This document shows positions 23,264 to 28,795 of a DNA stretch of 64,000 bases, piece after piece. Both the position numbers and the translations under genes were made by a program. The notes under the pieces were generated by a model, which was not told where the DNA came from, searched no databases, and worked only from the letters and a program-made list of their open reading frames with translations. The stretch covers positions 404,441 to 468,440 of the forward strand of contig NW_005434613.1 in NCBI RefSeq assembly GCF_000315625.1, in the 5' to 3' direction. The stretch's first letter is position 1. Each line of letters opens with the position of its first letter. Source of the DNA: Guillardia theta CCMP2712. Its lineage: Eukaryota; Protista; Cryptophyta.

Positions 23264-25991
23264 CTATGTATGACCTGCCCTCTCTAACTTGAGCTGGACC
23301 GGAGATCCTTTGGGGCTGTTGGCAAAACTCACGGCGAGGAGGGAGTCATATCGAGAGCTCACCCCAAGATATAATGCGAGGCCTCATCAGTCGTGCGGAC
23401 TTTCTTGCCATCCACCTCCAGCAATACATCGCCGACCTGCTCCCACGTCACTGTGCCAGATGGGCACGAGGATCACTGGAGTTTCGATTACCTCAATCTT
23501 GCCAGTCACCTTAGCTGGACCATCAGGGGATAAGCTCTTGACCATGAGAGGGTTTCTTCCGTCGGGCAGCTGGACGGCCTTGAAGATAACGCCTATGCCA
23601 GCCTTGGCTCGAGGATCCGTTTGCCTCATCTCTTGCCCATCATGGTTGGCAACGACGTATCCGAAGGTTCCAGTTGGCTGCGGGCGATTTATCATTCAGC
23701 TCCTGTCCTGCATCACAGCGATTCACGCTTGTACCGATGCGGCTTGAGCGAGAGCCTCCAGCACAGAGTTTCTCTCCTGATGCGAAGAGTCAAAAAGGAC
23801 AAAGGAAGGAGAGAGCGAACCTTTAGCTTGTCGTTCTCTTGCTGAAGAGGCCAAGACTGTCGCTGTTGACAAGAAGGGTCAAAAGGAAACAAGTGAAGTC
23901 TCCACAGGGAACCCGTTCGTCGTCTAAACCTTGCTGGGCCGCACGAAGCTTTGCCTTGATACAGACTCAGTGGTGAAAGAGACAGGTGCATCTGCTCACT
24001 TTGGCGTCATCCAGCTCTATCTCCAGTATGCTAATCCGAGACTAGAAGTCGGTGAGGAAGAGAGTTCACTCGCATTGCAACTTGCCTTCAAAACATTCAG
24101 CTGCCTCGAAGATTCTTCATCATGGATGCGACTCGCGTCGGACAGAGCAATCTTCGCCGCTTCTAGTTCTTTCTCGATGTCTCTTGCATGAGACTAGATG
24201 GTACATCATTCATTATCTTGCATCCCCAAAACATCGCAACCTTCCAGATGTCTCTTTCTTCGCACGCGTTCTCTAATCTCTCTGTGAGTTCCTTAATTAG
24301 CGTCTCGTTCTTCTACGAGTACAACAAGTCAGATACAAGAATGACGGTGAGAACATGTAGACCTGGTCGTTTCTGTTTTGCTTCTCTCTCTCAACAAACA
24401 GTCTTTCAGCTTCTTGCAGCTAAAAATACGCTCGTTAATCGGCATCTTGCAGCTACGAAAGTGGTCGTTAATTTCGTGCTCCACGGCAACTTACCTTGGT
24501 TTGAGCTTCACACAAGATCCTTGACGCTTCATCCTCTGCCATCTGTCGCAGATGACTCGCTTCTGATCGTGCCTGATCTATCAGCTTTTGTGCTTCCAGC
24601 TCAGCTTGACTCAAGATGTGTCGTGCTGTGTCTTGGACCTTCAACTGCTGAGTAGTGGGAGTGATGACCTTCACCGGGAATAGCCGTGTCTTCACACTGC
24701 GAAGATGAAAGAGAAGCTTGAGGAAAGAAGGACGAGAGCTGGGGTCGAGCTGCATACACATGGAAGCTACATTCCAGGTCACTTCATCCGCTCCCATGGG
24801 TTTCTCTAAACACAACTTTCCGTTTGCAACCTCCTCGATCACTCTCGAATCCTCCTGCACTTGCCAGTAGGGCATGCTTTCACCGAAAGACAAGAGCTCC
24901 CACACGAGGACTCCAAATGAGTAGACATCGCTCTTCTCCGAAAACTTGCGGCGGTTGCGGAGAACTTCAGGGGCCGTCCAGCGGCAAGGAATCGATAGGT
25001 CGTTATGCATCTGAACACTCATCGCTTGGCTTGTACCGAAGTCTGAGACCTTCACTAGAACTTTCTTCTCGTTAACATCTAGATGCACTACAAGGATGTT
25101 TCTCAGCGACAGATCGCGATGGAGCAGACCAGCATCAACAACACCATGCATTCCCGACGAAATCTGGTGAAGGATGTCCAGGAAGATGCTCTGACGACCT
25201 GTCTCATCCGCACGGAGCTCCTGCGCGAGGTTCTCTGCAACAACATCCAGGGAACCTAGCGGTGCCAACTCTTCGATCAAGAACTTGCTACCAAATGCAT
25301 CTGTTGTAAATCCATACAGAGTGATGAGATGCGGATGCCTGCTCAGCCTCAGCATCGCTCCAGCTTCTGTATCGATGTTGCCTGAACGGAACCGAACAAT
25401 GGCCACATCCCTGGAGCCCCACCAGCCTCTGTAGACCGACTTGTCTTGCCCTACTCCGATCTGCGCAAGGCGAAGATCGTCGTCACTGTAGTTGTCAAGA
25501 GTTGGGTTCGAGTCCCGCTCCTGTTGAGACAGATTCCTTACTTGCCTCCTCGGACGCGATGTGTTGAAACGGATGTCAATGGAGGGGATCATGTCAAATT
25601 TCAGCTCCTGATGTCTCTTTTCTTCCCAATCATCGATTGCCATCTTGAGTGGGGCGTTCTTTCGCAAGCTGAGATCGGCGGAACCGTCCCTCGACATCGG
25701 CTGATTGGTCATCGGGCTCACTTGGTTCTCGTGTAACCATAGCTCTATGAACTTGCGATCGTAGATGAAACCGTCGGCAGCAAACACAGGTTCCTCCATG
25801 ACCTTCAAGGAGATGGGGCATTGGAAGATGCTCGGAGCAGTGCTGAAGTCTACTTCAGATTCCATCGTCAATTTCCATCCAAGAGCCAACAGTTCCGATT
25901 TCAACAAACTCCTTTCGAAGTGCCTTACAATGTACGATGTGTCATCTGTTTGTGCTGCACCAGTCGAACAGTCATGGGAAACAAACACCAT
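23264..25991 (-). CDS. U-box + tyrosine-kinase-like domain + coiled coil + probable C-terminal PDZ
   Basis: U-box FQCPISLKVMEEPVFAADGFIYDRKFIELWL..SPMTN; kinase HRDLSLRN, SDFG, PCRWTAPE, SDVYSFGVLVWE; coiled-coil exons 24430-23990; PDZ AGIGVIFK..VKSLSPDGPAKVTGKIE/VGDVLLEVDGKKV..ILG/PKGSPVQLKLER. The kinase-to-PDZ join is inferred. Confidence 0.8.
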
Positions 25992-27039
25992 ATCATGTCA
26001 AGTCTATCTTTTAGCTAACTTCTCACCTACAATCACAAATGCTAAAACGATCTCGATCATTACGCTCCATGGTTCAGTGCTTTAGATCACACTTCGTAAC
26101 TTGATTCCTCGCTATTCCTGATCGGAACAAAATGGGTTGATAGTCATGATCAAGCTTGATAGTTATTTGTCCAGATGTCCTTGGATCTCTCTGTCGTTGT
26201 CTCAACTCTAAATGTCTTTCTTCCCCTTCTCCCCACCTCCCTGCATACCCACAAACCAACCGGACGTGTCACTGACATCTCCTCTGTTACCTATTCTGTT
26301 TGCTCTTCTTCACCTGCTCCCACCTCTTCTTCTGACATCTGCATATCTATACCAGCATTCCTTCCCTATGTCTGCCTCTACCTCTCCTTCCCCCGCCCCC
26401 CATGATCGCTCCATCGCCTCCTTGAAGGTTTGCATTCGCTTTCCTACCGAAGTCTCCTGGCGGGGAAGTGGTAGTACCCACCTCGACAAACAACCGATCA
26501 AATGGATGGGTGGGTACTATAACCCCTACCCACATTTTTACAACAATGTACTGGGAAGAATACGGGTCATAAAAGTTTTATGTACATGTTTGGGATGTTT
26601 GGGGATGGTGGGGTGGAGTACCACTACCCGGATATTACAGGAAACAGTACCGGTACTGACAATGAGTTTGGGATCTGTGTTGCACCCGTCCTAAATATAG
26701 ATTTTCATGGGGTGGGTTAGTTTTTAGCAATGATGATGAGACCGCAGCCTTGACGAAACATTGAGCGAGTCTCCTCCTCCTCCTCCTCCTCCTCCTCCTC
26801 CTCCTCCTCCTCTCCTCTCCTCTCCTCTCCTCTCCTCTCCTCTCCTCTCCTCTCCTCTCCTCTCCTCTCCTCTGTTGCCTTCTCTTTCTCCGGTCCCTGA
26901 CCTACCTTCGCTTCCTCTACCTACTTCCCCTCCATGCCCCTCTTGCTCTACCTCTTGATCATCTCCCTCCACGCTGCTTCTCCCGTCTTCTTGAGCCCAT
27001 CCTTGTCTGCCCTCAACGGATCCACGTGTCACGCCCAAA

Positions 27040-28795
27040 GTCAAAAGTGCACGACATCCTACGTATTGGATCGCTTTGATACGAACCGGTGAGTAAGTCT
27101 TTACCCACCGTGACCCCTTACTCACCTTCCATCTTTGTTGGGTTGAACCTCCAGCTTCGGGAATGTCTGTGCGCTAGACTGGAGAAGCAGGCAAGCTCTA
27201 AGTCGCCATGCTCTCGCTGGCTAACTGGCCGTATAGACTGAGATGCTTTGGAAGAGACCTGAATGGTTTGAGCGGGGAAGAAGATGTGACGATGACGATG
27301 ACGATGACGATAATACCAATCTGACTGCTCGCTTCTGAACAGATCAAGTGGGCCAAGATCGCACTTGGTTACCGTCACATGTGTGGGATCTTGGCTGAAG
27401 ACTCCGACTCTGACAGAGGAGTTGTGAGATGCCAGGGTGAGGCTGATGAGAAGCAAGTCGCTCTCGGCAAATTGGTCTGATAATTGTTGCATGCAGGCAA
27501 CAACATTCACTTGCAGGTTTGTTGGGAGAGGAGAATGTCCTTGGTTCAAGGTTTGTTGTGATTGTGTTGACTTGACAGGCCCAAGTCCCGTCTGATTACA
27601 AGGACGTGAAGTTCAAGAACATTTGTTCCGGAGCATACTTCTCTTGTGGAATAGGAAAGTGGAGGGAGGGAGAGAATGAGGCGGCGGCAAGGGAAGGATG
27701 GGAGTAAGGGAAGTGGGAAGGAGACAAGAGAATGGTGACAGGAAAGGAGGGTGTGAGAGCAGAGCGGAACAGAGGAAGGAAGGCGGAGCATGACTCGCTA
27801 TGTTTGATAGCTCTGTTTTCTTTCAGTGTCTTCGCTACCTCAAGACTCTCCTCTGAGTCAGCTGGTATGCTGGGGTGATTCTCCGATATCTCATGAAGCA
27901 GAGCAAGTGTTCAGAATGAAATTCTCCAAGGTGATCGAACCTCTAACCCTAACTTGCTTCCTTGCGCTGTTCGTCCAATTTCTTCTCCTCCCCCGCTCTC
28001 CTCCTCTCTTTCGCTCTCTTCCCCCCCTCCCTTGGTGCCTATCTCGGTGATTCACCAGCATAGTTGCTGTGCTCTCCCCTGATTCCTGGAACAGCTCTCT
28101 TGTTCGCACTTCAGCTTGTGCGCCATCGAAGAGGGGATTGACAGACTCCATTGCTGGGGAGATGAAGATATCATGAGGAAAAGTGTTCACCTGAGAGAAA
28201 GACGGCTGAGGAATGTAAGTGTCGGATACGACCACGCCTGTGCGATCGAGGTCGATTCTTCGATGAATGTCTGCTGGGGATCAAATTCCAAGATTCTAGA
28301 GGATGAAGATGGGCATGGTGAGGTTGATTTGTTTGCATGGGTTTTCGTGAAAGAAACATGAAATGATGATGGCTGGGGAGGGAGGAGGAAGAGGAGAAGG
28401 AGAGGAGAATTTGTTGAAATGATGAATGTTAGACAGTTGAAGGTGTAAAGATGGATGAAAGAGGAGGTCTGGTAAGACAATGGCTTGAGGAGGTGGAAAG
28501 CGGGAATCTCATGTGGATTATGATTAGCATCAAGTCACTTGTTGTGTTTCTTGTTTTTTGAATGACCACCGTTTGACGGGTTGTGCAACAGTTCAAACGT
28601 TTGTGACTGAAAAATCTCGAAGCTTTCATAGGAAGATTGAACAGGTGAGGAGCAGGGGGGGGGAAGGAATGTGAGGAGGAATGAATGGAATTTGAAAAAT
28701 CGAAAGGACGAGTAAGGAGAGCAGAAGGAGGGAGTGAACGAAAAGGAGAGAAAGCGGACAGGGAGAAGAGAGGTATCAAGGCAAAAGGACCCAAT

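Follow-up and report, generated by a model that had tools for sequence, protein, structure and literature searches.

A U-box-fused, tyrosine-kinase-type protein of Guillardia theta with a putative WNK-like relocation of its ATP-anchoring lysine

Can a protein kinase that lacks the canonical beta3 lysine anchor ATP through a lysine placed elsewhere in its fold, as the WNK kinases do, or is it a pseudokinase? The question is raised by a gene on the minus strand of the window, the 64,000-nucleotide stretch of the Guillardia theta CCMP2712 genome analysed here (contig NW_005434613.1, positions 404,441 to 468,440), which encodes a U-box, a kinase domain of the tyrosine kinase (TK) type, a coiled coil and a putative PDZ domain. 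The initial annotation, made from the sequence of this one locus, proposed that a lysine in the glycine loop of the kinase takes the place of the missing one, in convergence with WNK. Comparative evidence supports a convergent lysine relocation in a TK-type kinase, and the residue in question, K142, is probably the working ATP-anchoring lysine of an active enzyme since it occupies the same position as the WNK lysine.

The motifs on which the question turns are all present, where the initial annotation had placed them, in one minus-strand frame. They are listed here with residues counted from the methionine at 25865; A1 is an alignment of family members described below.

24468-25991, minus strand: open reading frame (ORF), from the ORF list, that holds exon 1 and all of the following motifs
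24711..25463, minus strand: protein kinase domain, tyrosine-kinase-type (Pfam PK_Tyr_Ser-Thr)
25440..25457, minus strand: Gly loop GVGQDK, in which the Lys codon aag (25442-25440) is K142, at the third-Gly position and the first residue of beta2
25395..25406, minus strand: beta3 motif VAIV (in DVAIVRF), in which the Val codon gtt (25397-25395) is V157, in place of the VAIK Lys
25394-25392, minus strand: Arg after V157 (R158), the beta3+1 position
25365..25367, minus strand: alphaC glutamate E167, the invariant E44 of A1, in helix 41-50 of the structural model
25098..25121, minus strand: catalytic loop HRDLSLRN (D251, N256), TK-type, in which Arg occupies D+4 and D+2 is not Lys
25035..25043, minus strand: DFG motif (D275), with its Asp invariant in A1
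24966..24989, minus strand: P+1 loop and APE motif PCRWTAPE, TK-type (PxxWxAPE)

The alphaC Glu, the HRD Asp, the catalytic-loop Asn and the DFG motif are thus all intact, and the alphaC Glu is the usual salt-bridge partner of the ATP-anchoring lysine. When the domain is aligned by HMMER with ABL and with the Src-Abl ancestor, K142 coincides with the third Gly of GxGxxG and V157 with the Lys of VAVK, in agreement with the substitutions first described, and a phmmer comparison with Protein Data Bank (PDB) sequences pairs the Gly loop with GGGQYG of ABL1. The Gly-loop stretch, IGVGQDKSVYRG, reads G-V-G-Q-D-K-S-V at its core and fits the WNK signature Gly-X-Gly-X-X-Lys-X-Val (PMC10708218). In WNK1, which is active, Lys233 from beta2 replaces the beta3 Lys (PMC4718504, PMC10211241, PMC13519141), and the window kinase is formally a pseudokinase just as WNK was until its activity was demonstrated (PMC4718504).

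We propose that the gene product would be a cytoplasmic U-box E3 ligase fused to a TK-type kinase, with a coiled coil and a PDZ domain after the kinase. The kinase lysine responsible for holding the ATP phosphates and for pairing with the alphaC Glu would have moved, with beta3 changing from VAIK to VAIV and the Gly loop from GxGxxG to GxGxxK at the start of beta2. The relocation would have been independent of that in WNK and would date to the root of a large family of E3-fused, TK-type protist kinases, with at least one later reversal by a concerted double change. The sequence motifs, the mutual exclusion of the two lysine positions across the family, the nested reversal and the purifying selection are observations; that K142 extends into the active site and contributes to phosphotransfer, and what the substrate specificity is, we infer.

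The relationship of the two lysine positions is first seen within the Guillardia genome. A six-frame search with the window kinase domain gives 62 matches at E <= 1e-10 and a search with the family profile gives 79 at E <= 1e-15; 61 of these loci were excised and aligned. About 55 paralogues lack the beta3 Lys and most of these carry GxGxxK, often as GSGSFK, one residue away from the WNK loop, with beta3 typically reading VAIQR, VAVLK, VAILR or VAILL. The exceptions that have a beta3 Lys among the aligned loci are a canonical tyrosine kinase-like (TKL) control, L056 (GSGSFG, VAVK, HRDLKSDN), and a few remote kinases. The nearest protein in a word search is from the cryptophyte Hanusia phi, with 81% identity across the kinase, and this orthologue retains both the loop Lys and the loss of the beta3 Lys. 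When the loci are aligned together with 120 word-search matches, 30 domains have the loop Lys without the beta3 Lys, 87 have a loop Gly with the beta3 Lys, and none has both lysines. A lysine at the third-Gly position occurs in 0 of 102 domains with the beta3 Lys and in 30 of 41 without it.

A similar pattern is seen well beyond the cryptophytes. A1 contains 19 family members picked for having the loop Lys, such that the invariance of this residue within it is by construction, and it is also invariant at A32, E44, H126, N133 and D152. The A1 profile was searched against 1.84 billion representative proteins, and the best 150 hits hold 305 kinase domains, among which 46 have the loop Lys without the beta3 Lys, 130 are canonical with loop Gly and beta3 Lys, and just one, an unrelated tandem TKL, has both. 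The third-Gly Lys is present in 1 of 194 domains with the beta3 Lys and in 46 of 75 without it, and these proportions, taken with those from the genome and word-search alignment, represent more than a chance association. In about 450 kinase domains overall, a lysine at one position excludes a lysine at the other, with a single exception.

The representatives with a loop Lys (K-loop domains) share less than 50% pairwise identity and fall into more than 45 clusters, and among them are proteins from the green alga Tetraselmis sp. GSL018 whose automatic names are "C-src tyrosine kinase" and "Janus kinase 2". Pfam together with local hidden Markov models identifies a U-box or a RING domain in 39 of 52 K-loop proteins (about 75%), either as a U-box just N-terminal of the kinase (21 proteins) or as a RING C-terminal to it (18 proteins); several of those that have neither are fragments. 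A U-box is present in 2 of 53 canonical-only proteins of the same hit list. The tails of the K-loop proteins vary and include ARM, PDZ, ubiquitin, Sel1, WW and LRR domains. The family is recognizable by GxGxxK, VAx[non-K], a HRDLAARN-type loop and D[FY]G, together with either a U-box preceding the kinase or a RING following it, and the window gene has this organization. The initial annotation had treated the lysine swap as a property of a single gene; the swap is real in that gene, but it is a trait of the large family to which the gene belongs.

The phylogeny of the family was reconstructed from trees that were all made after removal of the Gly-loop and beta3 motif columns. A FastTree reconstruction of 215 domains places all 84 K-loop rows within one clade of 102-110 rows. 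With IQ-TREE (LG+C20) and 85 intact domains there is a clade of 55 rows with a Shimodaira-Hasegawa-like approximate likelihood ratio (SH-aLRT) support of 83, containing 52 K-loop rows, one row in which the loop Lys has become Arg, and two canonical U-box kinases, P0232 and P0261; the window kinase lies in a subclade with 99-100% support inside the family clade. P0232 and P0261, each with a U-box and a kinase domain, read GRGSFG and IAVK, are nested three nodes deep (SH-aLRT 94/86/94) and adjoin a group that reads AHGSFK and IAVLR. Exclusion of the two from the K-loop clade costs 39 log-likelihood units (approximately unbiased test, p = 0.009), for a group that was named only after inspection of the tree. 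We considered whether these two could be chimeras that acquired a canonical N-lobe, and this was rejected because both lobes are most similar to K-loop members: with motif columns excluded, P0232 is 52% identical to them in the N-lobe and 59% in the C-lobe, versus 34% and 42% to the best canonical rows.

The simplest reading of these sequences is that the relocated lysine was gained once at the base of the family and that there was one reversal, in which the loop Lys changed to Gly and the beta3 Leu to Lys together. No intact intermediate with both lysines, or with neither, is present among the family domains examined. The covariation on which the initial annotation had made its proposal depend is therefore seen at several levels: in the Hanusia orthologue, in the paralogues, in the more than 45 clusters and in the nested double reversion, the loop Lys tracks the absence of the beta3 Lys.

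The state of the remaining catalytic residues is informative as to what the loop Lys might do, and was tallied in the 102-row family clade, 100 rows of which lack the beta3 Lys. The loop Lys is present in 84 of these 100, where the beta3 residue is L in 56, Q in 9, V in 5, C in 4, M in 4, S in 3, I in 2 and Y in 1. The alphaC Glu, HRD Asp, Asn and DFG Asp are all kept in 62 of the 84 K-loop rows, in both canonical revertants and in two of the three Lys-to-Arg rows. The core is kept in none of the 13 rows that have no Lys or Arg at either site, although these 13 rows reflect about three independent losses: the SAGSSQ group, locus L051 and the first domain of P0131. In the amplified SAGSSQ group the alphaC Glu has also changed to Gln, the Asn to His and DFG to GYG.

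The window gene is itself under purifying selection, judging from its divergence from the Hanusia orthologue (dN/dS of 0.064 for the kinase and 0.060 for the U-box, with dS about 1.7 and near saturation such that the ratios are rough). AlphaFold2 with A1 predicts a normal kinase fold, with a predicted local distance difference test score (pLDDT) of 91.2 and a predicted template modelling score (pTM) of 0.89. DSSP assignments on the model place residue 19 (K142) first in a beta2 strand spanning 19-26, residue 34 (V157) inside beta3 at 29-36, and residue 44 (E167) in the alphaC helix.

The foremost alternative is that the window protein is a pseudokinase that does not transfer phosphate, and in which the loop Lys is structural, forming a salt bridge to the DFG Asp or the alphaC Glu, or serves in nucleotide binding only, while the domain regulates or scaffolds the U-box ligase. 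By the formal criterion, under which a pseudokinase is missing the VAIK Lys, the HRD Asp or the DFG Asp, the change of the beta3 Lys to Val is sufficient to place it in this class (PMC4718504). The family is also a source of pseudokinases, in that many paralogues are clearly degenerate in sequence, with readings such as GYG, HRELAARS and HRDLAARH, and some of these still carry the loop Lys.

Several observations weigh against K142 having a catalytic role. The GCN2 pseudokinase domain has a structural beta2 Lys and is inactive (PMC12867742). Twenty-two of the 84 K-loop rows keep the loop Lys despite having lost other catalytic residues, so that retention of this lysine alone is no proof of catalysis. 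The loop tip in the window subclade is Gln-Asp-Lys (QDK), versus the Phe or Tyr tip of most kinases and the Ser-Phe-Lys of most family members, and the Asp beside the Lys might hinder ATP or phosphate binding in the manner of D289 of the GCN2 pseudokinase domain, or could take part in metal binding. The family-wide covariation amounts to no more than a single gain and a single reversal as independent events, and the group excluded in the likelihood test of P0232 and P0261 was chosen with the tree already in view.

Set against the pseudokinase explanation, the window kinase and nearly three-quarters of the K-loop rows retain all other catalytic residues, across clusters of less than 50% identity, which would be odd for a site that has long been dead. 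Loss of the loop Lys is always accompanied by decay of the core, and where the beta3 Lys was regained, the loop Lys disappeared simultaneously, as expected if one catalytic lysine is needed and either site will serve. We consider an inactive window protein to be unlikely, while giving it appreciable weight, and favor the interpretation that K142 anchors ATP.

A second alternative is that the catalytic charge is provided by the neighboring Arg (25394-25392), or by a one-residue shift in the beta3 register, with the loop Lys being incidental. The residue following the beta3 position is basic in 42 of the 84 family rows, or 50%, versus 22% of canonical rows, and some members read VAVLK. In the other half of the family, however, this position is occupied by V, Q, E, T, A, L, I or N, and within the subclade of the window kinase it reads R, R, L, L, E and F with the loop Lys kept throughout. 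The initial annotation had noted that substitution by the adjacent Arg would undermine its interpretation; the Arg is not conserved and the loop Lys is, and the variability at beta3+1 does not explain the pattern. Furthermore, from strand geometry, the side chain at beta3+1 points away from the ATP pocket, the 29-36 strand is unbroken in the DSSP assignment, and substitution of the beta3 Lys by Arg is characteristic of inactive kinases, among them KSR and EphB6 (PMC12599244). Compensation by the Arg was rejected, and a role of this kind is very improbable.

The placement of the window kinase among TK-type rather than WNK kinases is supported by several lines of comparison. The kinase domain matches Pfam PF07714 (PK_Tyr_Ser-Thr) with 148 bits (E = 3.3e-43) versus 92 bits for PF00069 (Pkinase), such that the TK profile outscores the Ser/Thr profile, and the P+1 loop conforms to PxxWxAPE. 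Its top PDB sequence matches are EGFR, ABL1, CSK, ITK and BTK, sequence matches to cytoplasmic TKs of animals and their relatives have E values of 1e-25 to 1e-29, and the top Foldseek matches are the tyrosine-kinase domains of SYK, ABL and EphA2. Relative to the catalytic-loop criterion for the TK group, HRDLAARN or HRDLRAAN (PMC4342544), the window sequence HRDLSLRN keeps the Arg at D+4 and has both Ala residues changed, while the family consensus is HRDLAARN. The activation loop of the window kinase has no Tyr. As to whether phosphotyrosine signalling might exist in this genome, a six-frame search found no match to SH2 and only weak, partial matches to the classical protein tyrosine phosphatase (PTP) profile; we note that dozens of TK-type kinases are present in the same genome.

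WNK is absent from the best 60 PDB sequence matches obtained either with the whole domain or with an isolated family N-lobe containing GSGSFKTV. These matches are TK and TKL kinases, including ABL, CSK, ITK, BTK, EGFR, CTR1, A-Raf, ACK1 and KSR2. The PDB sequence, Foldseek and Pfam results therefore agree with the initial annotation that the motifs are of the TK type and convergent with WNK rather than related to it, and homology to WNK was rejected. That the window kinase is a diverged WNK member that inherited its lysine position, as the shared GxGxxKxV and the Cys at beta3 of some relatives (VAVC, as in WNK) could suggest, is scarcely credible, given these matches, its HRDLxxRN and PxRWxAPE motifs, a family metal-binding motif of DFG or DYG rather than the DLG of WNK (PMC12867742), and the position of the family among canonical HRDLAARN kinases in the tree.

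A more speculative extension, which we regard as a long shot, is that the E3-fused family comprises working TK-type kinases outside of animals and their relatives, in which the beta2 Lys would, by analogy with WNK1, open a pocket behind the ATP site that could take an anion or another small ligand, and that these proteins could act in marine algae as ion or osmotic sensors that switch their own ubiquitin ligase.

The approximate architecture of the window gene was outlined by tblastn alignment with P0002, the full-length Hanusia orthologue (703 amino acids), in which Pfam identifies a U-box, a kinase and a PDZ domain. Its components are as follows:

23270..25865, minus strand: whole gene (approximate), with U-box, TK-type kinase, coiled coil and PDZ, from tblastn of P0002 against the window
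25865, minus strand: start Met, placed by tblastn of P0002 on the window
24495..25865, minus strand: exon 1, with the Met, U-box, linker, entire kinase domain and start of the coiled coil; its 3' end reads ...acc aag
25614..25835, minus strand: U-box domain, an E3 ubiquitin-ligase module (Pfam PF04564, ORF residues 53-126)
24489..24494, minus strand: splice donor gtaagt that closes exon 1, from reading of the sequence, with the Hanusia protein resuming in the next exon from about 24419
23270..24419, minus strand: downstream short exons with the coiled coil and C-terminal PDZ, from tblastn segments and with approximate boundaries

Exon 1 is collinear with P0002 residues 1 to about 455, and the U-box is matched with E = 6.8e-14 and 52.2 bits, versus a cut-off of 21.4. 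Several short introns lie downstream of 24495, and the P0002 segments align at 24312-24241, 24193-24083, 24041-23913, 23868-23806, about 23695-23520, and 23439-23362, with identities of 55-81%. Scanning these downstream exons one by one with Pfam gives no above-threshold match for the PDZ domain or the coiled coil, and the PDZ of the window gene is a putative assignment made by way of the Hanusia orthologue. The window is of low complexity at 26724-27125, immediately upstream of the gene, where one strand encodes GEERR-type repeats together with poly-Gly and the other poly-Pro with SSPLL repeats.

Among the various other family members, we note that the closest paralogue of the window gene, L002 (G000:C120:67841-71641), is 45% identical, reads GAGQDK and VAILL, and encodes a U-box, kinase and armadillo-repeat protein (P0003, P0157). 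The revertant P0261 (1019 amino acids) carries a PARP catalytic domain alongside its U-box and kinase. A degenerate two-gene module is found on small contigs, as L026 and L042 (C67, 2643-3347 and 6583-7389), L028 and L039 (C300, 20532-21233 and 24346-25149), and L044 and L050 (C122, 77074-77664 and 81141-81785). It consists of a long ORF (SAGSSQ, VAVLKL, alphaC Gln, HRDLAARH, GYG) and, about 3.9-4.1 kb from it, a short ORF of ~355 amino acids (GSGSSK, VAILRI, HRELAARS, DYG), and from its sequences looks like a recent segmental amplification of a pseudokinase pair. Tandem arrays are also seen, with P0121 (2911 amino acids) and other metagenomic representatives containing up to 10 TK-like domains, most of which lack catalytic residues and only the last of which is canonical.

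In open-access papers we found neither this family nor any WNK-type relocation among TK-type kinases described, and the sequence comparisons support the existence of a convergent beta2-lysine kinase within this family of E3-fused kinases. Few lineages are known to carry the ATP-anchoring Lys on beta2, these being WNK and POMK, which are active, and the GCN2 pseudokinase domain, which is inactive. If the interpretation of K142 is correct, then the family represents an independent, family-wide case of a beta2 lysine in a TK-type scaffold, with a natural concerted reversal, and the two lysine positions would be evolutionarily interchangeable and mutually exclusive. This then cautions against the pseudokinase label for hundreds of kinases from algae and protists, and against current automatic names such as "c-Src" or "JAK2", and indicates a class of kinase-E3 ligase fusions in marine phytoplankton that is unstudied.

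Comparison with known systems places the window kinase closest to WNK in the arrangement of its lysine, since both lack the beta3 Lys, carry a Lys in place of the third Gly, where beta2 begins, and retain the other catalytic residues. The window family differs in its TK-type catalytic and P+1 loops, its DFG or DYG motif, its fusion to a U-box or RING, its lack of WNK accessory domains, the absence of evidence for chloride sensing, and the absence of any specific sequence or fold affinity to WNK. In POMK (SGK196) the ATP-positioning Lys has also migrated to beta2, and an engineered swap back to beta3 is tolerated (PMC10211241), of which P0232 and P0261 provide a natural counterpart. However, POMK is without canonical HRD and DFG motifs and phosphorylates a sugar, whereas the window family retains HRD, Asn and DFG and resembles a protein kinase. 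Human GCN2 likewise has, in its pseudokinase domain, a beta2 Lys (K294) that replaces the VAIK Lys and pairs with the activation-loop Asp, and it shares with the window kinase an acidic residue in the loop; in GCN2 this acidic P-loop residue and a bulky Tyr at beta3 block ATP and the domain is inactive (PMC12867742). The GCN2 P-loop is degenerate, whereas the window kinase has GxGxxK, a Val at beta3 and an intact core. The cytoplasmic TKs (ABL, CSK, SYK and the TEC family) are the best sequence and fold matches and share HRDLxxRN and PxxWxAPE, but the window kinase has no SH2, SH3 or activation-loop Tyr, has a relocated lysine, and is found in an algal host. Plant PUB-class U-box kinases also combine a kinase and a U-box in one polypeptide, with the kinase N-terminal to the U-box and of the canonical receptor-like kinase (RLK)/Pelle Ser/Thr type with a beta3 Lys, whereas in the window gene the U-box comes first and is followed by a TK-type kinase in which the lysine is relocated.

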